Assembly (NCBI RefSeq): GCF_000006765.1
Contig: NC_002516.2
Strand: one strand, 5' to 3'
Source of the DNA: Pseudomonas aeruginosa PAO1
GTDB lineage: Bacteria; Pseudomonadota; Gammaproteobacteria; Pseudomonadales; Pseudomonadaceae
Length of the DNA: 64,000 nt
The position numbers and the translations under genes are program-made. The notes under the pieces were generated by a model. It worked only from the letters and a program-made list of their open reading frames with translations. It made no database searches and had not been told where the DNA came from. Below, in pieces: positions 18,267 through 46,814 of the stretch; position 1 is the stretch's first letter; every line of letters starts with the position of its first letter.

Positions 18267-19517
18267 TCAGCCAGCCAGCGCGCCGCGCGGCAGCAGGCCA
18301 GTGGTATCGATGCTCGGCGGGCGGCGGCCGATCTGCTCGGCCAGCAGGCGCCCGCTGCCGCAGGCCAGGGTGAAGCCGAGCGCGCCGTGGCCGAGGTTGA
18401 GCCAGAGGTTGCGGTAGCCGCCGTTGCCCACCAGCGGTACCCCGGTGGGCGTGGCCGGGCGCATGCCGGCCCATTCGACGGCAGCGTCGAAATCGCCGCC
18501 CTGCGGGAACGTGTCCCGCGCCTGCTGGCGCAGCAGTGCCAGGCGCGCGGGCTCGAGGCCGGGGTCGAAGCCGACGATGTCGACCATCGCGGCGATCCGC
18601 AGCCGCTCGCCGATCCGCGCGTAGACGATCTTGCGGTCGTAATCGGTGATGCTGGTATCCGGCGCGCGGTGCTGCGCGCCGACCGGCAGGGTCAGGCTAT
18701 AGCCCTTGAGCGGGTATAGCGGCAGGCGCAGGCCCGGCAGCATCAATTCGGCGCTGCGGTAGCCGGCGGCCAGCACCACATGATCGGCCTCGATGAGATC
18801 GCCGCCGACCTCGACGCCACGCACCGCCGCACCGCCCTCGACGATCTTCGTCACCCTGCGGCCATGCAGTTGCCGGCAATGTCCGGAAGCCTGCAGGCGC
18901 TCGGCAAGTTGCACGCAGAAGGCATGGCAGTCGGCGACCTCCTCGTCCGGCGTGTGGATGCCGCCGACAAAGGGCGCGGCGGACAGGGCCGGCTCCAGCG
19001 CGAGGCACTCGGCGGCGGTCAGGACGAATTGCGCCGAAGGATCGGCCAGGCCCTGGCGGGCCCGCGCAAAGCTGGCCGGTTGGCGAAACGCCACCAGCTT
19101 GCCGTTGCGCCGCCAGTCGAAGCCATCGAGGCCATCCTCCTCGCGCCAGTCCTGCAGGGTGCGCTGGCTGAGCAATGCCAGGCGCAGCAGGTGCGCGGCA
19201 TTGCGGCGGTTCAGCGAGCCGCGGCAGGCCGCGAGGAAGCCCAGCAGCCAGCGCCACTGCGCCGGATCAAGACGCGGCCGCAGGCGCAACGGCGCATCGT
19301 TGCGCAGCAGCCAGCCGAGCGCCTGGGCCGGCACGCCGCTGTCGGCCAATGGCGCCACGTAGCGATAGGACAACTGCCCGCCATTGGCGTAGCTGGTTTC
19401 CAGCCCGCCCCGCTCGCGCGCTTCCACCAGGGTCACGTCGAATCCTTCGCGAACCAGGGCGTAGGCCGTGGCCAGGCCGACCACGCCGGCGCCGATGATG
19501 CAAACCCGCTGAGCCAT
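18267..19517 (-). CDS. dguA: FAD-dependent D-amino acid (D-glutamate) dehydrogenase
   Basis: 416 aa; GAGVVG Rossmann motif, TSYANGGQLS, WAGMRPATP, NLGHGALGFTLACGSG. Confidence 0.9.
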   Translation of the reverse strand: MAQRVCIIGAGVVGLATAYALVREGFDVTLVEARERGGLETSYANGGQLSYRYVAPLADSGVPAQALGWLLRNDAPLRLRPRLDPAQWRWLLGFLAACRGSLNRRNAAHLLRLALLSQRTLQDWREEDGLDGFDWRRNGKLVAFRQPASFARARQGLADPSAQFVLTAAECLALEPALSAAPFVGGIHTPDEEVADCHAFCVQLAERLQASGHCRQLHGRRVTKIVEGGAAVRGVEVGGDLIEADHVVLAAGYRSAELMLPGLRLPLYPLKGYSLTLPVGAQHRAPDTSITDYDRKIVYARIGERLRIAAMVDIVGFDPGLEPARLALLRQQARDTFPQGGDFDAAVEWAGMRPATPTGVPLVGNGGYRNLWLNLGHGALGFTLACGSGRLLAEQIGRRPPSIDTTGLLPRGALAG

Positions 19518-19602
19518 GACAATCGTTATCCAGGTGTTTTCCAGGGCTTCGACGATAGGCGCGGATGACAGCGGTAGGACAATGAATAAAGATGGCCAGG
19601 GT

Positions 19603-19617
19603 ATAAATCCAGGTTAT
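19603..19617. promoter_or_regulatory. LysR-type recognition site between dguA and dguR
   Basis: ATAA-N7-TTAT inverted repeat (T-N11-A) 12 bp upstream of ATG 19630. Confidence 0.6.
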
Positions 19618-19629
19618 GGGCTCGCGCCG

Positions 19630-20538
19630 ATGAAGCTCCGCCATATCGAAGTGTTCCAGGCGATCCGCCAGGCTGGCTCGGTCAGCGGCGCCGCACAGTT
19701 GCTGCACGTGTCCCAACCGGCGGTGAGCAAGGTCCTGCAGCACGCCGAGCAGCAACTGGGCTTCCCGCTGTTCTTGCGAGTGCGCGGCAAGCTGCTGGCG
19801 ACTCCGGAAGCGCTGGAACTGGAGCGCGAAGTGGCCAAGCTCAGCGATAGCCTGCAGGCCGTGCGGCGCCTGGCGCAGAACCTGCGGCGCCAGCCGGGCC
19901 ACAGCCTGCGCATCGGCGCCACCCCGGCCCTGGCGCTGTCGCTGCTGCCGCGGGCGATCGGCGAATGGAGCGCGCGCTATCCGCAGAGCGGCTGCGAACT
20001 GGCCACCTTGCATTCGCGCGAGCTGGTGCAGGGCCTGCTGATGCGCGAACTGGACCTGGCCCTGAGCCTGAAGCAGCCGGAACACCCCGGCCTGCGCGGC
20101 GAAGCCATCGCCAGCGGCGTATTGGTGGCCCTGGCGCCGCGCGAACACTGGCCCGAAGCGGAACGCCGGCAGCCGCTGAGCCTGGCCGGGCTGGCCGGCG
20201 AAGCGCTGATCGGGCTGTCCACCGCCGACCCGCTGTTCGCCCGCCTGGAGGATTACCTCAGCGCCGTGGAGCCACCGCCGCAGGTGAAGATCGCCGTGCA
20301 GACCTACGCCCTCGCCCGCGCCCTGGTGGAGGCTGGGGCCGGCCTGGCGCTGGTCGATCCCTTCACCGCCCTCGGCGCCGACCCGCACAGCACCGCAATC
20401 CGCCCATTGAGCCCGGCCTTCCCGGTCACCCTCTACGCCATCACCCGCGCCGACGAAACCCCGCCGCACACCCTCGCTCCGCTGCTGCGGATGCTCGCCC
20501 GCCAGGCCGAGGAGCGTTTGCGGGCCGTGCAGATGTAG
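19630..20538 (+). CDS. dguR: LysR-family regulator of the dgu genes
   Basis: MKLRHIEVF...GSVSGAAQLLHVSQPAVSK LysR HTH; divergent from dguA; an alternative in-frame ATG lies at 19582. Confidence 0.9.
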   Translation: MKLRHIEVFQAIRQAGSVSGAAQLLHVSQPAVSKVLQHAEQQLGFPLFLRVRGKLLATPEALELEREVAKLSDSLQAVRRLAQNLRRQPGHSLRIGATPALALSLLPRAIGEWSARYPQSGCELATLHSRELVQGLLMRELDLALSLKQPEHPGLRGEAIASGVLVALAPREHWPEAERRQPLSLAGLAGEALIGLSTADPLFARLEDYLSAVEPPPQVKIAVQTYALARALVEAGAGLALVDPFTALGADPHSTAIRPLSPAFPVTLYAITRADETPPHTLAPLLRMLARQAEERLRAVQM

Positions 20539-20600
20539 CATTTGCCGCCTGGCCTGCCGCTGGAAACCTTGGACGTCGTTCTGGCCCACGCCTCGCGTAC

Positions 20601-21482
20601 TTACCGCTCCGGCTTCCAGTCTGGGCGGTCCGCGTCGTAGCCCTGGGTGGGATGAGGAGGCAGAGGATAGTCCTCTATCAGATTGGGGAAACGTAAGTCG
20701 GGGTCAGCTTCAAGCTTTTTGTAGATTGAATAATACGCTTCTCGCAACTTTTCGTCGGGGGCGTACCACATTGCACTTGCAGGGGGAGTCTCACTTCCGA
20801 AGACTCGTGATAGGAAAAAAGCCGCACTCTTGCCCCCCTGAGAGACTGACACCTGATAATAAACCAGTGCCTTTGGGAAATTGTGCTCTACTATCTTGTA
20901 ATACGCCCCCAGCTCATAACTAGCCGGCGCATAACCCTGACTAGCAGCACAGTGAGTATACGCCAACCCCAAATCCTTTTTTTTGGCCACATATATATAA
21001 AACTTACCTAGCTCAGTTAGTGCCGGCGGATTTCCTAGGCTAGCAGCCTTATCAAGGAAAGTAAGTCCGTCAGTTGCAGGGTTTTTAACCCCGGCGCGAT
21101 TTCCAATCATTGCTCCCATATCATAGAACCCCTGAGGCACATCCAGATCTATCATCTTTTGATAGAGATCCAATGCCTTCTGCGTATCTTTTTCTACTCC
21201 TCCGGGCCACCCTGTACGATAAAGATTCGCCAAGTTGTGCATGGCCTTCCAGTGGCCGCGCTCGGCCGCCTTGCTGTACAACCCGACGATACGAGGCCAC
21301 GGACGCAAGGTATCGGGCTTGGCCAGGGTCGCCGCTTCGCGATACCAAGCATCGGCCTGCGGGTCCAGAGGGGGTAGATGGTCCTTTTCGTTAACGCAGA
21401 CAAAAGGCTTGCTGTCAGCCATAGCGGGAACTGCTGCGAGACAAAGTACAGCCCATATTCCAATAGCCATTAGCCGAATCAC
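20601..21482 (-). CDS. tli5b: T6SS phospholipase immunity protein, Sel1-like repeats (distal copy)
   Basis: 293 aa; signal peptide, Sel1-like repeats (KAAERGHWKAMHNLANLY, KAASLGNPPA); paralog of the two neighbours. Confidence 0.9.
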   Translation of the reverse strand: MIRLMAIGIWAVLCLAAVPAMADSKPFVCVNEKDHLPPLDPQADAWYREAATLAKPDTLRPWPRIVGLYSKAAERGHWKAMHNLANLYRTGWPGGVEKDTQKALDLYQKMIDLDVPQGFYDMGAMIGNRAGVKNPATDGLTFLDKAASLGNPPALTELGKFYIYVAKKKDLGLAYTHCAASQGYAPASYELGAYYKIVEHNFPKALVYYQVSVSQGGKSAAFFLSRVFGSETPPASAMWYAPDEKLREAYYSIYKKLEADPDLRFPNLIEDYPLPPHPTQGYDADRPDWKPER

Positions 21483-28916: not shown

Positions 28917-30117
28917 GGTATACCTCCTCGGCGTGGCGAATGACGCGTTTCGGCAGATCGCCTCCCAGCCAGTAGGCCAGCTCCGCCGGACGCTCGATGT
29001 CCCAGGCGACGAAGTCGGCCAGCTTGCCGACCTCCAGGCTGCCGTGGCTGGCTTCCAGCCCCAGCGCCCGGGCGGCGTGCAGGGTGACACCGGCCAGCGT
29101 CTCCTCCGGGGTCAGGCGGAACAGGGTACAGGCCATGTTCAGCATCAGGCGCAACGACAGCGCCGGCGAGGTGCCGGGATTGAGATCGCTGGCAATGGCC
29201 ATGGCCACGCCGTGCCGGCGCAGGGCATCGATCGGCGGCAGCTGGGTCTCGCGCAACAGGTAGAAGGCGCCCGGCAGCAGCACCGCGACGGTGCCCGCCT
29301 CGCCCATGGCGCGGGCGTCGTCCTCGGTCATGTACTCCAGGTGGTCGGCCGACAAAGCCCGGTAGCGCGCCGCCAGGCTGGAACCGTGCAGCGAGGATAG
29401 CTGCTCGGCGTGCAGCTTCACCGGCAGGCCCAGCTCGCGGGCGGCGATGAATACCCGCTCGACCTGCGCCGGGGAAAACGCCAGGTGCTCGCAGAAGGCG
29501 TCCACCGCGTCCACCAGTCCCTCCCCGGCCAGCGCGGGGAGCATCGTCGAGCAGATATGCTCGATGTAGTCGTCGGCGCGCCCGGCGTATTCCGGCGGTA
29601 GCGCATGGGCAGCCAGGCAGGTGCTGCGCACGGTCGCCGGCAGGCGTTCGCCGAGGCGGCGGATGACCCGCAGCATCTTGCGTTCGCTGGCCAGGTCGAG
29701 GCCGTAGCCGGACTTGATCTCCAGCGCCGTCACGCCGTCGCGCAGCAAGGGCTCCAGGCGCTTGCGCGCGCTGGCCAGCAATTCTTCCTCGCTGGCCTCG
29801 CGGGTGGCGCGTACGGTGCTGGCGATACCGCCGCCGGCGGCGGCGATCTCGGCGTAGCTGACGCCCTCCAGGCGCTGCTCGAATTCGCCGCTGCGGTTGC
29901 CGCCGAACACCGCGTGGGTGTGGCAGTCGATCAACCCCGGGGTCAGCCAGGCGCCACCGAGGTCGATGCGTTCGGCGTAGTCGCCGGGCGGCAGTTCGGC
30001 GCGCGGGCCGATCCAGTGGATCAGCGGACCGTCGGTGACCAGGGCGGCGTCCTCGACGATCGAGTACTTGCCGCCCTTGAGGGTGGCGGCATGGCAATGC
30101 TGCCAGAGTCGTTTCAT
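28909..30117 (-). CDS. hutI: Imidazolonepropionase
   Basis: 402 aa; [41 protein letters not shown]. Confidence 0.95.
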
Positions 30118-31646
30118 TGCAGGTCTCCTATGCTCGCGGCCAGCCGGGCGAGACTCTTCCGCTCGCCGAGGATGGCCGCCGCGCTGGCGATGTCGGGAGC
30201 CAGCCAGCGGTCGGTGTCGTACGCGGGCACGCGCTCGCGCAGGATGCCCCAGGCCGCCGCGGTGCCCTGGCCGAAGCGTTGCGGGGCGAGGAATTCAAAG
30301 GCCTGGGCGGCCAGCAGGTACTCGATGGCGAGGATCCGCCGGAGGTTCTCCAGGGCCCTACCAAGCTTGAGCGCGGCACTGGTGCCGAGGCTCAGGTGGT
30401 CCTCCTGGAGCGCCGAGGTGACGAAGTTGTCGACCACCGCCGGCTGCGCCAGCTGGCGGTTCTCGCCGGCCAGGGAGGCGGCGACGTACTGGGTGATCAT
30501 CATCCCCGAGTTGACTCCCGGCTTGCCCACCAGGAACGCCGGCAGGCCGCTGACCAGCGGGTTGACCAGGCGATCCAGGCGCCGCTCGGCGACCCCGCCC
30601 AGCTCGGCCACGGCGATCGCCAGCAGGTCGGCGGCCATCGCCACCGATTCGCCGTGGGGATTGGCCTGGGATACCACCCGGTAGGCTTCCGGCGTACCCA
30701 GCAGCAGCGGGTTGTCGGTGGCCGAGTTGAGTTCGGTCTCTATCTGCCGCGCCGCGTGGGCCAACTGGTCACGGCAGGCGCCATGGATCTGCGGTATCGA
30801 GCGGATGCTCAGGGCATCCTGGGTGCGGATGCCGCGGGCGTTCTCCAGTACCTGGCTGCCAGCCAGCAAGGCTCGCAGATTGGCGGCGACCCGCTGCATC
30901 CCGGGATGCGGCTTGAGCGCAACGATCTCGGCGTCGAACGCCGCCAGTTGGCCGCGCAGGGCCTCGAAGCTCATCGCCCCGATCACGTCGGCCCACTGCG
31001 CCAGGCGCTGCGCGTCGTCCAGGGCCAGGCAGGCGAGGCCGGTCATGCACGGCGTGCCGTTGACCAGGCAGAGCCCGTCCTTGGCTCCCAGGCGCACCGT
31101 CGCCAGGCCTTCCGCCGCCAACGCGGCGGCGGCCGGCACGACGCTGCCGCGGTAGCTGACCTCGCCGATGCCGAGCAGGGCGATGCCGACGTGCGCCATG
31201 TGGGTCAGGTAGCCCACCGAGCCCTGGGCCGGCACCTGCGGGGTAATGCCGTGGTTGAGCAGCGCCAGCAGCCCTTCCACCAGCGAACGGTCGAGCCCGG
31301 ACTTGCCCTGGCTGTAGTTGGCGACGGCGGCACAGATGATCGCCCGGGTCTGTTCGTCGCGCAGCGGCTCGCCGACCCCGCAGGCATGGCTGAGCAAGGT
31401 GTTGCGCGACAGCTCGGCGAGCTGCTCGCCTTCCAGCAGGACGTCGCACAGCGCGCCGAGGCCGGTACTGATGCCGTAGGCACGCTCGCCGTTGGCGACG
31501 ATACGGCAGACGATGGCGCGGGCATTGTCGATCCGTGCCCAGGCCGCCGCCGACAGTTCCAGGCGCGCACCGTGCCGGGCCACCGCGACCAGTTCCTGCC
31601 AACGCAGCGGACCGTCGCCGAACACGACGCTCGGTAGGTCGCTCAT
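30114..31646 (-). CDS. Histidine ammonia-lyase paralog lacking the MIO-forming Ala-Ser-Gly
   Basis: 510 aa; HAL-fold motifs ([32 protein letters not shown]) but GSVGYLTH where HutH has [11 protein letters not shown]. Confidence 0.9.
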
Positions 31647-32473
31647 AGGTTCGCCACCCGCCGCTGGACGAAGCGGTCGACGTAGTCGTCGGCCGGCTGG
31701 TGGAGGATTTCCCGTGGTGTGCCGACCTGGATCAGCTGGCCGTCCTTGAGGATCGCGATGCGGTTGCCGATGCGTACCGCCTCGTCGAGGTCGTGGGTGA
31801 TGAAGACGATGGTCTTGTGCAAGGTTTTCTGCAGTTCCAGCAACTGGTCCTGCATGTCCGCGCGGATCAACGGGTCGAGGGCGCTGAAGGCCTCGTCCAT
31901 GAGGATGATCTCAGTGTCGGCGGCCAGCGCGCGGGCCAGGCCGACACGCTGGCGCATGCCGCCGGAAAGCTGGTGCGGATAGGACTTCTCGTAGCCCTTC
32001 AGGCCCACCGTGGCGATCCAGTGCAGGGCCCGCTCGTGGCACTGCGCCCGGCTTTCGCCGCGAACCTTCAGGCCGTAGGCGACATTGTCGAGCACGCTCT
32101 TGTGCGGCAGCAGGCCGAAACTCTGGAACACCATGCTGATCTTGCGCCGACGGAATTGCCGGAGGGCTTCCATGTCGTAGCGCAGGATGTCCTCGCCATC
32201 CACCAGGATCTCGCCGCTGGTGGGGTCGATCAGGCGGTTGAAATGGCGCACCAGGGTCGACTTGCCGGAACCCGACAGGCCCATGATCACGAAGATCTCG
32301 CCAGCGCCGATGGACAGCGACAGGTCGTTGACGCCGACCACGCAGCCGGTCTGCGCCAGCACTTCGCCCTTGCTGCGTCCCTGGCGGATCAGCGCCAGCG
32401 CGGCATCGGCGCGCGGGCCGAAGATCTTGAACACGTTCTTCACTTCGATCTTGTTCATCTGCGCACCGCTCAT
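31643..32473 (-). CDS. Betaine/proline (ProV-like) ABC transporter ATP-binding protein
   Basis: Start [12 protein letters not shown] (32473), 276 aa; [29 protein letters not shown]. Confidence 0.92.
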
Positions 32474-33321
32474 TTGCTCGTCTCGTGCCGGGAACGGCCA
32501 TAGGCCTGGGTGATGCGGTCGATCACCACCGCGAGGATGACGATCGCCAGGCCGGCTTCCAGGCCCTTGCCCACGTTCAGCGTCTGGATGCCCACCAGTA
32601 CGTCTTCGCCGAGGCCGCGGGCGCCGATCATCGAAGCGATCACCACCATCGACAGGGCCATCATGGTGGTCTGGTTGATCCCCGCCATGATGCTCGGCAG
32701 GGCCAGCGGCAACTGCACGCCGAACAGCTGCTGCCAGCGGTTGGCGCCGAAGGCGTTGACCGCCTCCATCACCTCGCTGTCGACCTGGCGGATGCCCAGG
32801 TCGGTGAGGCGGATCAGCGGCGGCGCGGCATAGATCACGGTGGCGAAGATCGCCGGCACCTTGCCCAGGCCGAACAACATCAGCACCGGGATCAGGTACA
32901 CGAAGCTGGGCATGGTCTGCATGATGTCCAGCAGTGGCATCAGCACCGCGCGCAGGCGGTTGCTGCGCGCGGCGAGGATGCCCAGGGGGATGCCGATCAG
33001 CACCGAGATGAAGGTCGCCACCAGCATCAGCGCGAGGGTCTGCATCAGCTTGTCCCAGAGGCCGACGGCGCCGACCAGGAACAGCAGGCCGGTGATCACC
33101 AGGGTCGGCAGCAGGCGCCGGGTGGCGTGCCAGGCGATCGCCGCGACGATCGCCAGCAATAGCCACCAGGGCGTGGCGCGGAGCAGCCCTTCGAGGTTGA
33201 CGATGGCCCACAGCAGGGTGTCGGAGATCTTGCGGAACAGGTCGCCGTAGTTGGTCACCAGGGCGTCGACCCAAGCGTTGACCCAGTTGGCGATGGAAAA
33301 TGTCAGGCGTTCGGGAAACAT
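32470..33321 (-). CDS. Betaine/proline (ProW-like) ABC transporter permease
   Basis: 283 aa; [41 protein letters not shown]. Confidence 0.93.
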
Positions 33322-33345
33322 GGTCTGCTCTCGTCGGTCGTGGGT

Positions 33346-34314
33346 TCAGAGTGCCGCTTCGATCTTCTTCGCCGCGTCCTCGTCGACCCAGGCGTGCCAG
33401 ACCTCGGGGTGCTCCTTGAGGAACTCGCGCGCCAGGCGCGCCGCATCGATCCGGTCCTTGGCCATCCGCGCCAGGTCGCTGTTCAGCAGCTCCGCCGGCA
33501 GGTTGACCTTCTCCAGCACCGCCACCAGCTCCGGCGCCTGGTCGTGGAAGGTCCGCGACAGGCCGACCTGGATCCTGATGCGCTTGTCGACGCCGGGCCT
33601 TTCCTCCAGGCGCACCAGGCCGGCGCGGCCCATCAGCGGCGTCGGCGACCAGTAGTAGAACAGGATAGGCTCGCCGCGCCGATAGCTCGACAGCACCGCC
33701 GCGTCCAGTGCCGGGCCGGTGCCCGGACGGAAATTGGTGAACGTCTCCTCCAGGCCGTAGCTTTTCAGCATCTCGCTGTTCTCCAGCTCGCAGGTCCAGC
33801 CGGCCGGGCAATTGTAGAAGCGCCCCTTGCCCGGTTCTTCCGGGTCGCGGAAGACCTCGGCGTACTGCGCCAGGTCGGCGATAGAGCGCAGCTTCGGCGC
33901 CTTCGCCTCGAGCTTGCGCTGCGGGTCGCCCTCGATCACGTAGCGCGGCACGTACCAGCCCTCCACCGCGCCGACGATGGGTTCGCCGACGCCGACCACC
34001 TTGCCGGCGGCGGCGGCCTTGTTCCAGGCGTCGCTGCGGCCGATCCACTCCTCGGCGAAGACCTGGATGTCATTGGTGCTCAGCGCCTGCTCCATGGTGA
34101 TCGAGTTGCCCGGCAGGCTGTCGGTGGTACAGCCGTAGCCCTTGGCCAGGACGAACTGCATCAGTTCGGTGAGCAGCGTCCCGCTCTCCCAGTTCAGCCC
34201 GGCGAACTTCACCGCCTTGCCGGACTCGCACCAACCTTCCGCCTGGGCGCCCGCCGCGGCGGCGAGCAGGCCGAGGGCACAGAGAACACTCAACATCGAC
34301 TTCTTGTATCGCAT
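33346..34314 (-). CDS. Betaine-type (ProX/HisX-like) ABC substrate-binding protein
   Basis: Start MRYKKS (34314) with signal peptide; [31 protein letters not shown]. Confidence 0.9.
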
Positions 34315-34431
34315 GGTTCGACGCTCCAGATGCACGATTGGGAAAGGCAGTTGGAAAACCTGCGGGCCGCGCCCGGGGGAACGGCCTCGATCATTGTTAT
34401 TGGCCGGCGGCTCAGGCCGCCGTCGGTTCCG

Positions 34432-39073: not shown

Positions 39074-40753
39074 TCAGCGCTGGGCGGTGATCATCGGCAG
39101 GTTCAGGCCCTGCTCCTTCGCGCAATCGATGGCGACCTGGTAGCCGGCGTCGGCGTGCCGCATCACCCCGGTCCCCGGGTCGTTGGTCAGTACGCGGGCG
39201 ATGCGTTCGGCGGCCTCGTCGCTACCGTCGCAGACGATCACCATCCCGGAGTGCTGGGAGAAGCCCATGCCTACGCCGCCGCCGTGGTGCAGCGAGACCC
39301 AGGTGGCGCCGCTGGCGGTATTCAGCAGGGCATTCAGCAGCGGCCAGTCGGACACCGCGTCGGAGCCGTCCTGCATGGCCTCGGTCTCGCGGTTGGGGCT
39401 GGCCACCGAGCCGGAGTCGAGGTGGTCGCGGCCGATGACGATCGGCGCGGACAGCTCGCCCGTGCGCACCATCTCGTTGAAGGCCAGGCCGAGCTTGGCG
39501 CGCAGCCCCAGGCCAACCCAGCAGATGCGCGCCGGCAGGCCCTGGAAGCTGATGCGCTCGCGGGCCATGTCCAGCCAACGGTGCAGGTGGGCATCGTCGG
39601 GGATCAGTTGCTTGACCTTGGCGTCGGTCTTGTAGATGTCCTGCGGGTCGCCCGACAGCGCGGCCCAGCGGAACGGACCGATGCCGCGACAGAACAGCGG
39701 GCGGATGTAGGCCGGGACGAAGCCGGGGAAATCGAAGGCATTGGCCACCCCCTCTTCCTTGGCCATCTGGCGGATGTTGTTGCCATAGTCGAAGGTCGGC
39801 ACGCCCTGCTGCTGGAACGCCAGCATGGCCCGCACGTGTACCGCCATGGACTGCTTGGCGGCCTTGACCACGGCGGCCGGGTCGGTCTGCGCGCGGTCGC
39901 GGTACTCTTCCCAGCTCCAGCCGGCCGGCAGGTAGCCGTTGAGTGGATCGTGGGCGCTGGTCTGGTCGGTGACCATGTCCGGGCGTACGCCGCGGCGAAC
40001 CAGTTCCGGAAGGATCTCGGCGGCATTGCCCAGCAGGGCGATGGAGATGGCCTTGCCTTCGGCGGTGTAGCGCTGGATCCGCGCCAGGGCGTCGTCCAGG
40101 TCCTTGGCCTGCTCGTCGACGTAGCGACTGCGCAGGCGGAAGTCGATGCGGCTCTGCTGGCACTCGATGTTCAGCGAACAGGCGCCGGCCAGGGTCGCCG
40201 CCAGCGGCTGGGCGCCGCCCATGCCGCCAAGGCCGGCGGTAAGCACCCAGCGGCCCTTGAGATTGCCGTCGTAATGCTGGCGGCCAGCCTCGACGAAGGT
40301 TTCGTAGGTGCCCTGGACGATGCCCTGGCTGCCGATGTAGATCCACGAACCGGCGGTCATCTGGCCGTACATCGCCAGGCCCTTGGCGTCCAGTTCGTTG
40401 AAGTGTTCCCAGGTCGCCCAGTGCGGCACCAGGTTGGAGTTGGCGATCAGCACCCGCGGCGCGTTGGCGTGGGTCTTGAACACGCCGACCGGCTTGCCGG
40501 ACTGTACCAGCAGGGTCTCGTCGTCGTTCAGTTGCTTGAGGGTCTCGACGATCCTGTCGTAGCACTCCCAGTTGCGCGCGGCACGGCCGATGCCGCCGTA
40601 AACCACCAGTTCCCTGGGGTTCTCCGCGACCTCCGGGTCGAGGTTGTTCATCAGCATGCGCAGCGGCGCTTCGGTCAGCCAGCTCTTGGCGGTCAGCGTA
40701 GTGCCGCGCGGGGCGCGGATTTCAATATCGCGGAATTTGCTCGGGGTGGTCAC
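39074..40753 (-). CDS. hutU: Urocanate hydratase
   Basis: GTG start 40753 (559 aa); [54 protein letters not shown]. Confidence 0.96.
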
Positions 40754-40853
40754 GGCAGGCTCCTGGGCGTGGCGTTCAACGGGCGGCGACCGGCGAGGGT
40801 GCGCCTGAATTCGGGGACGAAGCAGAGGTCGGGCTGGGTCTACCGAACACATC

Positions 40854-40875
40854 TATGCTTGTACATACAAGTATA
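40854..40875. promoter_or_regulatory. HutC operator at hutU
   Basis: Near-perfect palindrome TATGCTTGTA-CA-TACAAGTATA with the TGTA-N2-TACA core known for HutC. Confidence 0.8.
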
Positions 40876-40891
40876 AGCAAAGGAAGGGCCA
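40876..40891 (-). promoter_or_regulatory. Sigma-54 (-24/-12) promoter of hutU
   Basis: Minus strand TGGCCC-TTCCT-TTGCT versus consensus TGGCAC-N5-TTGCW; abuts the HutC operator. Confidence 0.7.
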
Positions 40892-41078
40892 ATTCTGCCG
40901 CCACGCCCTCCGGCGATATCTCCACATTCCCGTGAATTTCATTCAACCCGTTGATTTTTCTGTAGTTAAGAATTAGCGAAGGTAGCCTCTCCCCCGGGAG
41001 AAGGAGCCTGCCGGAACGGCCCTGGGTGCACGTGATCGAAGCGTGCGCGCACCGGTTTGGGGCCTTCGGTAACACCGT

Positions 41079-41876
41079 TCAGCGCAATTGCGGGTAACCC
41101 CAGCCCTGCGCCTGACGCTCGTAGTCGAGGAGAATCCGGTAATGCTCCTCGCCGGCCGGGAGGAAGCTTTTCAGCGCCAGTGTCGCGGCCAGGTGCGGGC
41201 ACTCGATCAGCGTCAGGTTCAGCGCTTCGAACAGCTCGCGGCGTTGCGCCGCACTCCAGTGCAGCGAGGTGATCAGCGGCAAGGCCGGGCTCGGCGCGCT
41301 GCGCCCGAGCACGCGCAGGCCGTCCAGGCGCTCCGGTGCGTGGCGTTGCAGGTAGCCGAAGGTCACTGCATCCACCGAGGTCAGCTCGACCTCACCCGCG
41401 GCCACCATCGCCAGGCTGCGCAGGTGGCCGCCGCTGATGTGCACCTCGGCGAAGAACGCCGAGTCTCGCCCCAGCGGCGCCAGCGCATGGCGCAGCAGGT
41501 TCATGCCGCTGTTGGAGTCGTGGTCGTTGAGCGCCAGGCGGGTATTGCGGAAGTCGCCGAGGCGCTGGCGCGCCTGTCCTTCGGCGGCGACGAACAGGCT
41601 GCAATGCTCGCCGGGAGCACAATCGGGCAAGTCGTAGCTGGGCACCGCGAGCACCGCCACCTGGCCGCGCAACTGGGTCATCAGCGGATAGCCGCAGGTC
41701 TGCGCGAACAACAGGTTAGGCTGTCGCCACTGCACCGCCAGATCGGTGGCGGCCGACGCGTAACGGCGCACGCCCAGGCGCCGGCAGACCTCGCCGATGA
41801 AGGTTGCGCCGGCCTGCCTGACGCAGTCCGGCTCGACATACATGTCCAGCGCCGCCACCACCGGGGTATCGATCAT
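41079..41876 (-). CDS. PhnD/SsuA-like binding-protein-fold protein without a signal peptide
   Basis: 265 aa; QTCGYP, NDHDSNSGMN, SGGHLRSL, SVDAVT, SPALPLIT resemble phosphonate-binding protein family; family call from motif memory. Confidence 0.65.
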   Translation of the reverse strand: MIDTPVVAALDMYVEPDCVRQAGATFIGEVCRRLGVRRYASAATDLAVQWRQPNLLFAQTCGYPLMTQLRGQVAVLAVPSYDLPDCAPGEHCSLFVAAEGQARQRLGDFRNTRLALNDHDSNSGMNLLRHALAPLGRDSAFFAEVHISGGHLRSLAMVAAGEVELTSVDAVTFGYLQRHAPERLDGLRVLGRSAPSPALPLITSLHWSAAQRRELFEALNLTLIECPHLAATLALKSFLPAGEEHYRILLDYERQAQGWGYPQLR

Positions 41877-41894
41877 GCTCTCGTCCGCCTGCCT

Positions 41895-42833
41895 TCAATG
41901 CTCGGGATGCACTGGCGCATCCACTGGCCGCCAACCGTGGCGCCGCCATAGACGACCATAGCCGGGCAGGTGGAAATCGCCACTGCGTCGCCGGTAGGCA
42001 CGGCGGCTTGCGCTATACACGCGCGGCAGCAGGTACCAGGGCAGGCCCGGCAGATCGTGGTGGACCAGATGCAGGTTGTTGTTGAGGAACAGCAGCCGCC
42101 ACGGCCACCCCGCGTCGACCAGCACGCTGCGCTGCGCCGGCTCGCGGGCCGGACGGTGCTCGTAGAAAGAGCGCAGCATGCTCAGGCCGAGGGCCGGATA
42201 GGCCACCGCCGGCAGGTACAGCCAGGGCGGGATGCCCGCCCAGCGCCAAAGCCCGGCCAGCAACCCGCCCAGCAGCACGGCATGCAGGCCCCACAGGCGC
42301 CAGGCGGCACCCTCTCCCCGGCGCAACCGCGAACCTTCCAGGCGCGCCATCGCCGCCAGGGCCAGCAGCGGGCCGAGGGTGGCGCGACCGAGCAGGGTCT
42401 TGTCCAGGCAGAGCCAGCGCCGCCGCCAGGAGCCCAGGCGCGGCCACTCGGACAGACTGACGTAGCGACTCTCGGGGTCCAGCCCCGGGTAGGTCAGTTG
42501 CTCGTCGAGGTGGTGCCGCAAGTGGCTGTCACGGTACAGCGGATAGGGATACCAGACGGCCAGTGGCAGGTAGCCGAGCATGGCGTTGAACCTCGGCCAG
42601 CGGGTCGGGTGGCCATGGATCAGCTCATGCTGCAACGACATGTAGAGGGAGGCGAACGGCACCAGTCCCGCCAGTACCGGCCAACCCCAGCGCTCATACT
42701 GGCTCGCGAGCAGTGCCCAACCGCCGTACAGGCAGGCGACCAGCAGCCAGGTCGGCCATTCGCTGCGCGCCTGGAAGGTATCCTGGAGCCGCCGCACCAG
42801 GGTGCGCTGACGCCCGCTCAGGTAGTGCGCCAT
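41895..42833 (-). CDS. Membrane di-iron fatty-acid desaturase/hydroxylase superfamily protein
   Basis: 312 aa; three His boxes QHELIH, HLRHH, HLVHH plus hydrophobic segments. Confidence 0.85.
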   Translation of the reverse strand: MAHYLSGRQRTLVRRLQDTFQARSEWPTWLLVACLYGGWALLASQYERWGWPVLAGLVPFASLYMSLQHELIHGHPTRWPRFNAMLGYLPLAVWYPYPLYRDSHLRHHLDEQLTYPGLDPESRYVSLSEWPRLGSWRRRWLCLDKTLLGRATLGPLLALAAMARLEGSRLRRGEGAAWRLWGLHAVLLGGLLAGLWRWAGIPPWLYLPAVAYPALGLSMLRSFYEHRPAREPAQRSVLVDAGWPWRLLFLNNNLHLVHHDLPGLPWYLLPRVYSASRRAYRRRSGDFHLPGYGRLWRRHGWRPVDAPVHPEH

Positions 42834-42848
42834 GAAGGCTGGCGAGGC

Positions 42849-43871
42849 TTACTTCAGGGAGGTATCGAGGCGCGCGGCGACTTCGGCCGGCACCCAGTGG
42901 CTCCAGATTTCGCGATGCTGGCGAAGAAACTGCGCACGCACCTCGCCGACCTCGCGATGATTCTGCGCCATGTCGGCGAGCAGCTCGTTGAACAGCGGCA
43001 AGGGGATCTCGACCTTGCGGAACAGCTCGACCAACGCCGGCGCCTTGTCATGGAAATCGCGGGAAACGCCAACGGTGATCTTCGCCGGCAACGAGCGGGA
43101 ACCGATGGGGTCGGGGTTCTTCGGATCGGACAGGGTGGCCCAGGCCTTCTCGCTGAACGGCGGCTCTTCCAGTTGCACCAGCTTGAAACGGCCCATCAAC
43201 GGAGTCGGCGACCAATAGTAGAAAAGCACCGGCTCGCCGCGCCGGAAGGCCGCACTGATCGCCGCATCCAGCGCCGGGCCGGTGCCGGTGCGGAAGTTCG
43301 TGTAGCTGTCCTGCAACCTGTAGGCCTTGAGCTTCTGGCTGTTGACGATCTCGCAGGTCCAGCCGGTCGGGCAGTTGTAGAAACGCCCCTTGGCGGGCTC
43401 CTCGGGATCGCGGAATAGCGCCTTGTAGCGCGGCAGGTCGGCGACCGACCTCAACTCCGGCGCCTTCGCCTCGATGCCTCGTTGCGGGTCGCCCTTGACC
43501 AGGTACTCCGGCACCCACCAGCCCTCGGTGGCGCCCTTCACCGTCTCGCCGACGGAGAACACCTCGCCCGCCTCCTCCGCCGCGCGCCACACCGGGCTAC
43601 GCCCGGCCCATTGCTCCCCGGTGACCTGGATATCGTTCTGGCGCAGGGCGTTTTCCATGGTCACGGTATTGCCCGGCAGCGCGTCGGTCTCGCAGCCGTA
43701 GCCTTTTTCCAGTACGTAGCGCAACAGGTCGGTGGTGAACATGCCGCTTTCCCAGTTCAGCCCGGCGAACACCACTTTGCCCGGGTACGGGCATTCCGCC
43801 GCGACGGCGGTCTGGCTGGCGAGGCTGGCGCCCAGGGCGAGGACGGCGAGGATCTGGCGAAGCGGGGGCAT
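42849..43871 (-). CDS. Orphan betaine-type ABC substrate-binding protein (paralog of 33346-34314)
   Basis: Start MPPLRQIL (43871; alternative 43901); signal peptide; [24 protein letters not shown] shared with the paralog. Confidence 0.88.
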   Translation of the reverse strand: MPPLRQILAVLALGASLASQTAVAAECPYPGKVVFAGLNWESGMFTTDLLRYVLEKGYGCETDALPGNTVTMENALRQNDIQVTGEQWAGRSPVWRAAEEAGEVFSVGETVKGATEGWWVPEYLVKGDPQRGIEAKAPELRSVADLPRYKALFRDPEEPAKGRFYNCPTGWTCEIVNSQKLKAYRLQDSYTNFRTGTGPALDAAISAAFRRGEPVLFYYWSPTPLMGRFKLVQLEEPPFSEKAWATLSDPKNPDPIGSRSLPAKITVGVSRDFHDKAPALVELFRKVEIPLPLFNELLADMAQNHREVGEVRAQFLRQHREIWSHWVPAEVAARLDTSLK

Positions 43872-43960
43872 GCGGGTCTCCCGGTTGGAGTCGGACGGCA
43901 TGCGGAACTATATAGGCATTAAAAATATTGGATTAATAACGTTTGATTCTTTGGATAGAC

Positions 43961-43993
43961 AAAAGCGCCTACCCTTTCGGTGTAGACGCTTTT
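43961..43993 (-). terminator. Intrinsic terminator of hutCD
   Basis: Minus strand AAAAGCGTCTACACC-GAAA-GGGTAGGCGCTTTT hairpin, 19 bp after the hutD stop. Confidence 0.7.
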
Positions 43994-44012
43994 TCCTGGC
44001 GGCGCCGGCGAA

Positions 44013-44603
44013 TCACAGCGAATCGAGTTCCACCGCACAGACCCACGCCGGCTCGTGGGCCGTCAGGCGCCAATGCTGCAAGCCCTGCAGCCCCTCGGCG
44101 CACAGGCAGTCGTGGGCAGCCAGTTGCCCGCGAGGTTGCCCTTGCAAGGAAATCGCTACCCCGTCCTGCTGGGCGAACAGCAGCAGCGTGCTCGCCGTGC
44201 CGTGCCAGTCCAGCTCGCCCTCGACCCGCAGCCATTGCAGGCGCGCGCGATGGCGCCGGGGCGCATAGATCAGGTTGAAGTCGCGGATAGCTCCATCGAG
44301 CAGGGTGCAGTGCACCTCGCTGTCGCCGGAAAAGGCGAAGGCCTGCCGGGCGCGTAGCGGCGCGGATTCCGCGCCATCCACCCGCAGGCGCATGCCGCCG
44401 CCCTCCAGCACGCTGATGATCCGCTGGTAACCGGCGAAGCCGGAGAAGCCGCCGGACTCGCCGACATCGGCGATCGACAGGCGCCAGCCGAAGCCGTCCA
44501 GGCCGTCGCCGCCGTCGCGGGCGATCTCCTCGGTGGAGCCGGCGCCGTTCTTCCACGGCATTCTCGGGTAGTCGACGGCACGCAGGATGCGGAGTTCGCT
44601 CAT
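44013..44603 (-). CDS. hutD: HutD-family protein
   Basis: Start MSELRILRA (44603) overlapping the hutC stop; MPWKNGAGSTEEI, WRLSIADV, FSGFAGYQR, DFNLI. Confidence 0.92.
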   Translation of the reverse strand: MSELRILRAVDYPRMPWKNGAGSTEEIARDGGDGLDGFGWRLSIADVGESGGFSGFAGYQRIISVLEGGGMRLRVDGAESAPLRARQAFAFSGDSEVHCTLLDGAIRDFNLIYAPRRHRARLQWLRVEGELDWHGTASTLLLFAQQDGVAISLQGQPRGQLAAHDCLCAEGLQGLQHWRLTAHEPAWVCAVELDSL

Positions 44604-45352
44604 GAGCTGAAACGTCCTTCCAGACGGTGGCGGGAACCCGGGTGCAGCAGCCGCGCGGCGGTCACCGCGACACGCCCGGACCATGTGCGGCGGCGGATCA
44701 GCAGGCACGGCTCGCCGCGTTCGATCTGCAACAGCTTGCACTCGGCCGGCTCGGCGAGGATCGCCTCGACCACATGCTCGCCCTCGGTGAGCGGCGCCAC
44801 CTGGGTCAGGTAGGCATAGGGCGTTTGCCGGGTGAAATCCTGCTTGAGGTAGTCCGGCGCCACCGCGGCGTTCACGTAGCGGTCCTCGATCTGCACCGGG
44901 ATATCGTTCTCGTAGTGCACGATCAGCGAGTGGAACACCCGCTGGCCTTCGCGCACATCCAGTGCCAGGGCGCGCTCGGGGCCGGCGACCTCCTCGCCGA
45001 GGGTGATCACCTGGCAACGATGGCGATGCCCGCGGGCCGCGATCTCGTCGGCGATGTTGTGCACCTCGAACAGCGCCGACTGGCCCTTGGGCTCGGCGAC
45101 GAAGGTTCCTACCCCCTGCATGCGCACCAGCAGGCCGTCGCTGGTCAGTTCGCGCAGGGCGCGATTGATGGTCATGCGACTGAAGCCGAGCTGGCTGACC
45201 AGTTCGCTCTCGGACGGCACCCGGTGGTGCGGCGGCCAGGCGCCCGACTGGATCTGGCTGACGATCATCTGCTTGACCCGCGCGTAGAGCGGCGCCGGTA
45301 CCTCGCCGAGTTGCGAGGCCAGCGGGGAACGATCGGAGGAAGAGGACGTCAC
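44600..45352 (-). CDS. hutC: Histidine utilisation repressor (GntR/UTRA)
   Basis: 250 aa; PSESEL, SRMTINRAL, QGVGTFV, EHVVEA, RRTWS. Confidence 0.95.
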   Translation of the reverse strand: MTSSSSDRSPLASQLGEVPAPLYARVKQMIVSQIQSGAWPPHHRVPSESELVSQLGFSRMTINRALRELTSDGLLVRMQGVGTFVAEPKGQSALFEVHNIADEIAARGHRHRCQVITLGEEVAGPERALALDVREGQRVFHSLIVHYENDIPVQIEDRYVNAAVAPDYLKQDFTRQTPYAYLTQVAPLTEGEHVVEAILAEPAECKLLQIERGEPCLLIRRRTWSGRVAVTAARLLHPGSRHRLEGRFSS

Positions 45353-45408: not shown

Positions 45409-45430
45409 TGTATATGTATATACAAATAAA
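45409..45430. promoter_or_regulatory. HutC operator between divergent hutC and hutF
   Basis: TGTATATGTA-TA-TACAAATAAA with perfect TGTATATACA core (45415-45424), similar to the hutU operator. Confidence 0.75.
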
Positions 45431-45452
45431 ACAGACTGCGTGTGAGCTGATT

Positions 45453-46814
45453 ATGTCCGCAATTTTCGCTGAACGTGCGTTGCTGCCGGAAGGCTGGGCG
45501 CGAAATGTCCGTTTCGAGATTTCCGCGGACGGAGTCCTCGCCGAGATTCGTCCCGACGCCAACGCCGACGGCGCCGAACGCCTCGGCGGCGCCGTGCTGC
45601 CGGGGATGCCCAACCTCCATTCGCACGCGTTCCAGCGCGCCATGGCCGGGCTCGCCGAAGTCGCCGGCAATCCCAACGACAGTTTCTGGACCTGGCGCGA
45701 GCTGATGTACCGGATGGTCGCTCGACTGTCGCCGGAACAGATCGAGGTCATCGCCTGCCAGCTCTACATCGAGATGCTCAAGGCCGGCTACACCGCGGTG
45801 GCGGAATTCCACTACGTCCATCACGACCTCGACGGCCGCTCCTACGCCGACCCCGCCGAACTTTCCCTGCGCATCTCCCGCGCCGCCAGCGCCGCAGGTA
45901 TCGGCCTGACCCTGCTGCCCGTGCTTTACAGTCACGCAGGCTTCGGCGGCCAGCCGGCCAGCGAGGGCCAGCGGCGCTTCATCAATGGCAGCGAGGCCTA
46001 CCTGGAACTGCTCCAGCGCCTGCGCGCGCCGCTGGAGGCGGCAGGCCACTCCCTGGGCCTGTGCTTCCACTCCCTGCGCGCGGTGACTCCGCAGCAGATC
46101 GCCACGGTCCTCGCCGCCGGCCACGACGACCTGCCGGTCCACATCCATATCGCCGAACAGCAGAAGGAAGTCGACGACTGCCAGGCCTGGAGCGGACGCC
46201 GGCCGTTGCAATGGCTGTACGAGAACGTCGCGGTCGACCAGCGCTGGTGCCTGGTCCATGCGACCCACGCCGACCCCGCCGAGGTGGCGGCGATGGCGCG
46301 TAGCGGCGCGGTGGCCGGCCTGTGCCTGAGCACCGAGGCCAACCTCGGCGACGGCATCTTCCCGGCGACGGACTTCCTCGCCCAGGGCGGGCGCCTGGGC
46401 ATCGGCTCGGACAGCCACGTCTCGCTCAGCGTGGTCGAGGAACTCCGCTGGCTGGAATACGGCCAGCGCCTGCGTGACCGGAAACGCAACCGGCTGTACC
46501 GCGACGACCAGCCGATGATCGGCCGCACGCTCTACGACGCTGCTCTGGCTGGCGGCGCCCAGGCCCTTGGGCAGCCGATCGGTAGTCTCGCCGTGGGCCG
46601 TCGCGCCGACCTGCTGGTGCTCGACGGCAACGACCCCTACCTGGCCAGCGCCGAGGGCGACGCCCTGCTCAACCGCTGGCTGTTCGCCGGCGGCGACCGC
46701 CAGGTGCGCGACGTGATGGTGGCCGGCAGATGGGTGGTGCGCGACGGCCGGCATGCAGGGGAAGAACGCAGCGCACGGGCATTCGTCCAGGTGCTGGGGG
46801 AACTGCTCGACTGA
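45453..46814 (+). CDS. hutF: Formiminoglutamate deiminase
   Basis: Start MSAIFAE (45453), 453 aa; PNLHSHAFQR, EFHYVHH, HIHIAEQ, TEANLGDG, IGSDSH. Confidence 0.94.
   Translation: MSAIFAERALLPEGWARNVRFEISADGVLAEIRPDANADGAERLGGAVLPGMPNLHSHAFQRAMAGLAEVAGNPNDSFWTWRELMYRMVARLSPEQIEVIACQLYIEMLKAGYTAVAEFHYVHHDLDGRSYADPAELSLRISRAASAAGIGLTLLPVLYSHAGFGGQPASEGQRRFINGSEAYLELLQRLRAPLEAAGHSLGLCFHSLRAVTPQQIATVLAAGHDDLPVHIHIAEQQKEVDDCQAWSGRRPLQWLYENVAVDQRWCLVHATHADPAEVAAMARSGAVAGLCLSTEANLGDGIFPATDFLAQGGRLGIGSDSHVSLSVVEELRWLEYGQRLRDRKRNRLYRDDQPMIGRTLYDAALAGGAQALGQPIGSLAVGRRADLLVLDGNDPYLASAEGDALLNRWLFAGGDRQVRDVMVAGRWVVRDGRHAGEERSARAFVQVLGELLD

Follow-up and report, generated by a model that had tools for sequence, protein, structure and literature searches.

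PA5103-PA5101 of Pseudomonas aeruginosa: a sulfur-starvation-induced operon in the hut region and a candidate module for uptake and oxidation of an organosulfur onium compound

Introduction

What are a betaine-type binding protein, a desaturase-like membrane enzyme and a phosphonate-type binding-protein fold doing side by side in a histidine utilization (hut) locus? The question is raised by PA5103, PA5102 and PA5101, three genes in a 64-kb stretch of Pseudomonas aeruginosa PAO1 DNA (the window, to which coordinates refer) that is the hut region of this organism. The function of the trio is uncharacterized in the literature searched. The original prediction, made from the sequence alone, described three co-oriented genes with short gaps, and the open reading frame coordinates and a reading of the sequence bear this out: all three lie on the minus strand, separated by 15 bp (42834-42848, PA5103/PA5102) and 18 bp (41877-41894, PA5102/PA5101).

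PA5103, 42849-43871, minus strand: 340-aa periplasmic binding protein of the OpuAC/ProX type with a signal peptide (open reading frame as called, 42849-43901)
PA5102, 41895-42833, minus strand: 312-aa membrane di-iron protein of the FA_desaturase superfamily with three His boxes
PA5101, 41079-41876, minus strand: 265-aa protein of the PhnD/AioX fold without a signal peptide

The start of PA5103 was corrected to the second ATG, at 43871 behind GGGAGA, which is the most likely start and yields the recorded 340-aa product. The three genes form an operon that is independent of HutC and induced by sulfur starvation. As to function, sequence and comparative analyses give, in our judgement, about an even chance that the trio is a sulfur-scavenging module that takes up and oxidizes an organosulfur onium compound.

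Regulation and boundaries of the operon

The sulfur-starvation data come from the supplementary RNA-seq and proteome tables of one study, in which PAO1 on succinate and NH4 without sulfur was compared with PAO1 supplied with sulfate (PMC12581299). The RNA log2 fold changes were +2.63 for PA5103, +2.86 for PA5102 and +0.98 for PA5101 (false discovery rates 2e-8 to 5e-5), which is a 6-7-fold rise for PA5103 and PA5102, and the protein changes were +1.37 for PA5103 and +1.30 for PA5101. The hut genes went down in the same comparison (hutU RNA -1.13, HutX protein -2.65, HutD protein -1.94), and the histidine catabolism genes were in the down-regulated set in this medium without histidine. Sulfate starvation had been named in the original prediction as a state in which the genes might be expressed, and the induction of all three while hutU, HutX and HutD fall agrees with it. 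A second dataset, an indirect one, comes from a PA2504 mutant, in which PA5103 and sulfur genes are both lowered (PMC8466066). PA5103-PA5102-PA5101 have also been listed as an operon (PMC12606150).

The borders of the operon were read from the following features.

43961-43993, minus strand: intrinsic-terminator-like hairpin after hutD, with a 12-bp stem containing one G-U pair and a 9-nt loop, then UUUUGUCU (the U-tract)
43872-43960, minus strand: presumed promoter region of PA5103, AT-rich, with a -10-like TATAGT at 43912-43907 and a poor -35
40858-40871, minus strand: HutC operator of the hutU promoter, CTTGTATGTACAAG, a perfect match
45413-45426: second HutC box of the window, in the hutF/hutC region
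39074-40852, minus strand: hutU
44013-44600, minus strand: hutD
44600-45352, minus strand: hutC
45414-46814, plus strand: hutF

The terminator that had been proposed to insulate the module from hutCD was found as the hairpin at 43961-43993 with its UUUUGUCU tract. The hairpin has a folding energy of -24.8 kcal/mol (z -2.9), is conserved in a sister-species locus (L048) and reads as the upstream boundary of the module; a simple terminator scanner missed it owing to the 9-nt loop. A consensus scan for sigma-70-like promoters upstream of PA5103 gave none that passes, in agreement with the poor -35, and an operator scan found no HutC box there at up to 3 mismatches, the only boxes of the window being those at 40858-40871 and 45413-45426. 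The TATAGT -10, the poor -35 and the lack of a HutC box all stand as predicted, and both the missing box and the opposite movement of the module and of hutU, HutX and HutD place the module outside HutC control. The operator at 40858-40871 is the downstream boundary of the module, with hutU under its own control region.

Assembled contigs from RNA runs, whose breaks prove neither transcript starts nor expression levels, break at ~40840-40900 in four runs from two studies. In two of these four runs contigs end at 43953-44029, which is weak evidence for the promoter-side border. The contigs of all four runs also break inside the middle of PA5102 (window 41990-42660), where the GC content is 72-75%, and this is probably a coverage artefact rather than a transcript end.

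The binding protein PA5103 and its transporter

PA5103 matches the OpuAC profile of Pfam (PF04069, E 1.3e-55, residues 42-328) and has a hydrophobic N-terminal segment at residues 6-25. It is 52-54% identical to HutX, as expected of the close paralog of the product of the gene at 33346 that it had been taken for. HutX belongs to a ProXWV-type ATP-binding cassette (ABC) importer whose genes, hutX-hutW-hutV, span 31643-34335.

hutX, 33346-34335, minus strand: binding protein
hutW, 32470-33321, minus strand: permease
hutV, 31643-32473, minus strand: ATPase

No permease or ATPase gene lies beside PA5103, and the nearest of the ProW/ProV type are hutW and hutV, ~9.5 kb off; the description of PA5103 as an orphan binding protein holds.

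The nearest solved relative of PA5103 is DmpX, which binds dimethylsulfoniopropionate (DMSP; 7YLE, E 7e-35). The DMSP pocket of DmpX consists of four Trp, Tyr, Glu and Thr residues plus an Ala/Thr backbone contact and, in a comparison by alignment only, PA5103 keeps 8 of the 8 positions (W40, T69, W88, E116, W171, T172, Y218 and W220). The eight cage residues are invariant in all of the PA5103-family binding proteins compared (73/73). This aromatic cage argues for a site built for a trimethylammonium or dimethylsulfonium group. HutX has the same cage except for T69/S, so the cage points to an onium ligand without identifying it.

The proposal that PA5103 borrows the ProWV-like core of the Hut importer was judged plausible, and HutWV is a candidate for the shared permease and ATPase. 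Sharing of this kind has a precedent in P. aeruginosa, where CbcWV serves several binding proteins, CbcXWV working with the orphan proteins CaiX and BetX. In other pseudomonads a permease that is 67-70% identical to HutW lies beside the sister binding protein and has no neighbouring ATPase gene. This arrangement was seen in ten loci (L034, L035, L037, L040-L044, L087 and L100), and these systems must therefore also borrow an ATPase. In comparison with multi-binding-protein importers of the ProXWV type, such as HutXWV, CbcXWV and the DMSP importer DmpXWV (7YLE, PMC10030565), PA5103 has the same OpuAC fold and signal peptide, the same cage of four Trp and a Tyr with Glu and Thr contacts at the DmpX positions, and an orphan gene near a core transporter of its own family. 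Unlike them, it is induced by sulfur starvation and shares an operon with a membrane oxygenase, and neither PA5103 nor PA5096 is induced by glycine betaine or osmotic shock (PMC3691474).

The membrane di-iron enzyme PA5102

PA5102 matches the FA_desaturase profile (PF00487, E 5e-33) and has four predicted hydrophobic membrane helices. The three His boxes of a di-iron enzyme that had been noticed in the middle gene are HELIH at residue 69, HLRHH at residue 104 and HLVHH at residue 255; they hold eight conserved His and are invariant in an alignment of 27 orthologs. The predicted model has a mean confidence (predicted local distance difference test, pLDDT) of 87.5. Among solved folds it comes closest to a chain of the chloroplast Ycf2/Orf2971-FtsHi motor complex, with a template modelling (TM) score of 0.65-0.69, and to AlkB (TM ~0.5). 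None of the NCBIfam desaturase models reaches its cutoff with PA5102, the sole weak matches being CrtR and GntB, a free-arginine hydroxylase.

PA5102 therefore shares with the membrane di-iron desaturases and hydroxylases (acyl-lipid desaturases, AlkB, CrtR/CrtW and GntB) the eight His in three boxes, the four predicted helices and the predicted fold. It differs from the members of this superfamily in scoring under every curated subfamily cutoff, in having no linked electron donor, and in its constant pairing with a gene for a cytoplasmic binding-protein fold and with importers of polar compounds. The gene context of PA5102 argues for a polar substrate.

In aggregates grown in synthetic cystic fibrosis sputum medium (SCFM2), PA5102 is up 27-fold, and a PA5102 transposon mutant has an altered aggregate phenotype that can be complemented; the authors of that work predict a DesB-like role (PMC11784459).

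The PhnD/AioX-fold protein PA5101

PA5101 matches the Phosphonate-bd profile (PF12974, E 3e-16). A Foldseek search with its predicted model (pLDDT 91.9) returned AioX, ArrX, PtxB and PhnD at TM ~0.8, and the family profile matches AioX with an E of 6e-23. Residues C61, S121-N-S123, H151 and D169 align with Cys106, Ser161-Asn162-Ser163, His192 and Asp210 of the arsenite/phosphate pocket of AioX. No hydrophobic N-terminal segment or signal peptide is present in PA5101 or in its 27 orthologs, which places the protein in the cytoplasm, in keeping with the cytoplasmic binding-protein fold that had been assigned to the third gene. PA5101 is predicted from its sequence and model to be a cytoplasmic oxyanion binder. 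An ESM Atlas search returned generic PhnD-type names only. The predicted complex of PA5102 and PA5101 scored 0.20 against a mark of 0.32, which weighs neither for nor against binding.

The closest known systems are the PhnD-like periplasmic oxyanion sensors AioX, ArrX and ArxX (PMC5908839), with which PA5101 shares the pocket Cys, the Ser-Asn-Ser loop, the His and the Asp. Unlike these sensors, PA5101 and its orthologs lack a signal peptide and are partnered with a membrane oxygenase, and among the neighbours examined no PhnCE transporter or AioS/AioR-type kinase or regulator lies beside PA5101 or its homologs.

The complete AioX pocket, including the Cys that bonds arsenite, and the nearest folds, which bind arsenite, arsenate, phosphite and phosphonate, suggest another type of ligand. 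The trio could act on a phosphorus or arsenic onium compound such as trimethyl-aminoethylphosphonate or arsenobetaine, with PA5101 binding the phosphonate, phosphite or arsenite moiety. Compounds of this kind would suit the onium cage of PA5103, and OpuAC-type proteins are known to take up arsenobetaine. This reading is nevertheless very unlikely, as the neighbours of the pair are sulfur and amine genes rather than phn, pho or ars genes, and the only regulation dataset at hand is one of sulfur starvation.

Conservation of the gene pair

A word search with PA5102 found thousands of relatives, and orthologs, patchily spread, turned up in 29 of 251 Pseudomonadaceae genomes scanned. The loci analysed comprise 20 from the genome scan and 80 named loci, and 99 of them, from Pseudomonas and Betaproteobacteria, hold the desaturase-like gene. 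In 82 of the 99 the next gene downstream, in the same orientation, is the PhnD-like one, often with a 4-bp overlap, and a binding protein of the HutX family is found within 8 kb in 71 of the 99. The conserved unit is the pair of PA5102 and PA5101, an old association of two genes. At least four gene orders tie this pair to an OpuAC-type binding protein across Gamma- and Betaproteobacteria. The arrangements observed are the following.

Desaturase-like gene, PhnD-like gene, extracytoplasmic function (ECF) sigma factor, binding protein: 49 loci
Desaturase-like gene, PhnD-like gene, ECF sigma factor, FecR, TonB receptor, binding protein, permease: 10 loci, with no ATPase gene next to the permease
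Desaturase-like gene, PhnD-like gene, ECF sigma factor, FecR, TonB receptor, binding protein, SsuA family, OCD family, HAL-like lyase: 7 loci, and 1 more without FecR and receptor
Binding protein, desaturase-like gene, PhnD-like gene: P. aeruginosa and Pseudomonas sp. GM18
Crp, TonB receptor, desaturase-like gene, PhnD-like gene, with a flavin amine oxidase: Duganella and Burkholderia
OpuAC-type ABC importer directly upstream of the desaturase-like gene: Trinickia
N-methyltryptophan-oxidase-like (MTOX-like) gene in place of the pair partner, with a divergent SfnB-family gene: P. oryzihabitans group

The GM18 trio has a divergent LysR gene, with a TMADH/DgcA-like enzyme and a 2-oxoglutarate oxygenase nearby. 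Across the loci, the pair's neighbours include an SsuA-family binding protein (above the NCBIfam cutoff), SfnB-family oxidoreductases, the MTOX-like oxidase, the flavin amine oxidase and the TMADH/DgcA-like enzyme. The loci repeatedly feature a binding protein of the betaine type, uptake across the outer membrane, oxidation of amines and scavenging of sulfur. The suggestion that the substrate is not a fatty acid and that the module may scavenge sulfur fits these neighbours, among them the SsuA and SfnB families, the amine oxidases and an ergothionase-like lyase. The sulfate-starvation systems ssu, tau, msu, sfn and ats are similar in that the module is induced along with these operons in the absence of sulfur and has SsuA- and SfnB-family neighbours in other genomes. 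They differ in that the module's enzyme is a membrane di-iron oxygenase rather than a flavin- or 2-oxoglutarate-dependent one, and its binding protein is of the betaine rather than the sulfonate type.

These neighbourhoods also bear on whether PA5102 is a true desaturase or hydroxylase of lipids or acyl chains, acting on exogenous or membrane fatty acids with the binding-protein genes as bystanders. Such a role would account for the PF00487 match, the three His boxes, the four hydrophobic helices, the resemblance of the fold to the Ycf2/Orf2971-FtsHi chain and AlkB, and the SCFM2 phenotype with its predicted DesB-like function. However, PA5102 falls below every NCBIfam desaturase cutoff, is induced by sulfur starvation, and has no DesC-type reductase or DesT-type regulator nearby. 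PA5102-type genes show close and widespread linkage to genes for binding proteins of soluble ligands, for TonB receptors and for amine or sulfur enzymes, and no lipid genes were found near the desaturase-like genes in the loci analysed. A lipid substrate is thus unlikely, and we favour a polar, sulfur-bearing one.

In the ECF-type clusters a strongly conserved motif precedes the desaturase-like gene. It consists of an inverted repeat, GCATAAnnTTATGC or TTCTAAGC..ATAACC, and then ATCTGCAAGATTT..(~13 nt)..TTGCACAGA. It lies at ~9380-9545 in L037 and at the same place in L034-L044, L053-L055, L070, L081, L087 and L097, and it occurs once per genome in three motif-bearing genomes checked. The motif probably serves the clusters as a promoter of their own that needs the ECF sigma factor or an activator. 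The P. aeruginosa genome has a single one-mismatch match, upstream of rpoB, which was set aside as a chance match. Iron control through Fur is not indicated, the best Fur-box match upstream of a desaturase-like or ECF sigma gene being 13/19.

Composite origin of the P. aeruginosa trio

The trio had been described as a self-contained module, a description that is not supported in the sense of one ancestral unit. In three related species (G094, G009 and G131) a binding protein 70-77% identical to PA5103 lies between hutD/hutH and hutU and stands alone, without a desaturase-like or a PhnD-like neighbour. Their genomes have an ECF-type cluster as well, at another site, and its binding protein is more distantly related. 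In G094 and G009 the hut-locus binding protein is preceded by a region with a HutC-like box, CCTGTATATACAGG; P. aeruginosa has the terminator and the AT-rich stretch in place of this region. The binding-protein tree puts PA5103, the GM18 protein and the hut-locus proteins in one clade (support 97/93), which is sister to the cluster-linked binding proteins (100/99), with HutX outside both. The PA5102 tree mirrors it, as PA5102 groups with GM18, whose trio lies outside any hut locus. In L130 and L132 a second HutC-like box, TTGTCTATACAA, lies between the hut-locus binding protein and hutU, ~100 nt after the binding-protein stop codon, besides the hutU operator.

The sequence GGTGTTACCGAAGGCCCCAA, found after the PA5101 stop codon, is also the sequence after the binding-protein stop codon in G131, and this shared junction indicates a clean insertion or deletion of the desaturase/PhnD pair at that point. 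Since PA5103 orthologs stand alone in the hut loci of related species, the P. aeruginosa trio is composite, and it appears from these comparisons to combine a binding protein resident in the hut locus with an oxygenase/binding-protein pair that is conserved widely. The module has a GC content of 0.683 and the window 0.665, a match that gives no sign of recent transfer. The neighbourhood conservation that the original prediction had looked to is therefore found for the pair and for its association with a binding protein, and not for the trio as one ancestral module.

The hut-locus position of the PA5103 clade raises the possibility that the trio is an accessory of histidine utilization, in which PA5103 would be a second histidine, urocanate or imidazole-compound binder for HutWV and PA5102 and PA5101 would process a non-sulfur derivative (hercynine or methylhistidine) as a carbon or nitrogen source. 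The clade members at hutD/hutH-hutU in three other species, two of them with CCTGTATATACAGG, the paralogy of PA5103 and HutX and a second HAL paralog in the same locus, lacking the MIO cofactor triad, are what one would expect of such an accessory. In P. aeruginosa, however, the region upstream of PA5103 lacks a HutC box, the hut genes go down while the module goes up when sulfur is withheld in histidine-free medium, and most desaturase/PhnD-like pairs lie outside hut loci. We consider this explanation quite unlikely.

The trio might also be a relic in decay that lacks a coherent function in P. aeruginosa. The transporter, ECF sigma factor, FecR and TonB receptor of other species are missing from the P. 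aeruginosa module, and in a sister species (G222; L048 9590-10080) the PA5102 ortholog is itself a remnant with three internal deletions totalling ~500 bp. Decay is hard to reconcile with the identical, intact proteins encoded on at least 1000 P. aeruginosa contigs, where all three products are present letter for letter, with coordinated regulation of RNA and protein, and with the complemented mutant phenotype (PMC11784459). It is highly improbable, and sulfur scavenging from an onium compound remains the reading that we prefer.

A possible link to ergothioneine

Which onium compound would be involved? Eight pseudomonad clusters end with a gene for a HAL-family lyase lacking the 4-methylideneimidazole-5-one (MIO) cofactor, after the SsuA-family and OCD-family genes (L070, where the gene lies at 19427-20923, L081, L097, L102, L103, L129, L038 and L039). 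Six full copies were aligned, and these have GES-D in place of the MIO triad Ala-Ser-Gly. The best solved relative of the L070 lyase is the ergothionase of T. denticola (6S7J), which reads GEGD there. The thiolate-binding Lys position of ergothionase is Arg in the six aligned lyases, Asn in hercynine lyase and Val in HAL.

Ergothioneine or a related histidine betaine is the best single candidate in view of the lyase, the kinship with HutX, the cage for an onium group, the location in the hut locus and the regulation by sulfur. An ergothioneine-like substrate is our leading guess, to be taken as a lead only and, on comparative analysis, a doubtful one; the alternatives are DMSP, S-methylmethionine and sulfonated betaines. 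Compared with ergothioneine and hercynine catabolism (6S7J; histidine-betaine trimethylammonia-lyase, bioRxiv 10.1101/2025.08.13.670108), eight related clusters carry a MIO-less lyase, with a cationic residue at the thiolate site in the six full copies, and the P. aeruginosa module adjoins hutU. On the other hand, that lyase is missing from P. aeruginosa, the module has no linked thiourocanate hydratase or desulfhydrase, and the desaturase-like enzyme is absent from the ergothioneine pathways described in the literature found.

The hut locus of P. aeruginosa has its own second HAL paralog, which is PA5093-like (window 30114-31646, minus strand). It lacks the Ala-Ser-Gly triad that forms the MIO cofactor, scores just under the hutH equivalog cutoff and has Tyr at the ergothionase thiolate-binding Lys position. 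The substrate of this paralog may have a better leaving group than histidine does.

Proposed mechanism and counter-evidence

We infer a mechanism for the trio that covers the transporter it shares, the class of substrate, the reaction and the part played by PA5101. PA5103 would capture the onium ligand in the periplasm and probably hand it to HutWV or another ProWV-type core. PA5102 would most likely oxidize the imported polar compound at the inner membrane face, and PA5101 would most likely capture the oxyanionic group or product, for example a sulfinate, sulfonate or sulfite, by which the sulfur would be made available to the cell. A further possibility, also doubtful, is that this amounts to a new oxidative route of C-S cleavage, in which the substrate of a membrane di-iron "desaturase" is a soluble onium compound brought into the cell, for instance ergothioneine, an AioX-type Cys pocket takes the released sulfur oxyanion, and the route is wired in many pseudomonads to surface signalling through a TonB receptor and ECF sigma factor.

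Several observations weigh against sulfur scavenging by the trio or against ergothioneine as its substrate. The PA5102 ortholog of G222 is broken while the flanking genes are intact (the binding protein 92% and the PhnD-like protein 88% identical), and the enzyme is therefore dispensable there. The cage that PA5103 shares with HutX does not discriminate the ligand. The three module proteins are not depleted in Cys or Met, unlike some sulfur-starvation proteins. The sulfur-gene neighbours differ from genome to genome, and the sampled loci are mostly from related pseudomonads and are not independent. No electron-transfer partner (cytochrome b5, ferredoxin, rubredoxin or reductase) was found among the annotated neighbours in the window or the related loci. 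With regard to ergothioneine, an ortholog of the ergothionase-like lyase is missing from the P. aeruginosa genome (G001), where HutH and the PA5093-like paralog, 34-35% identical to the cluster lyase, are the only relatives, and P. aeruginosa HutU reaches 691 bits against a thiourocanate hydratase cutoff of 930 and scores as a urocanase.

Biological significance

If the proposed function is correct, a core P. aeruginosa operon whose expression rises in sputum-like aggregates and when sulfur is limiting would gain a role. The known chemistry of the desaturase superfamily would then reach to small polar substrates, and the arsenite-sensor binding-protein family would acquire a cytoplasmic branch. 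Ergothioneine is abundant in soil and in the host, and the mining of its sulfur by bacteria is only partly known. The related clusters would represent a widespread pseudomonad uptake system, consisting of a TonB receptor, an ECF sigma factor and a betaine-type binding protein, for a compound of the soil or the host.

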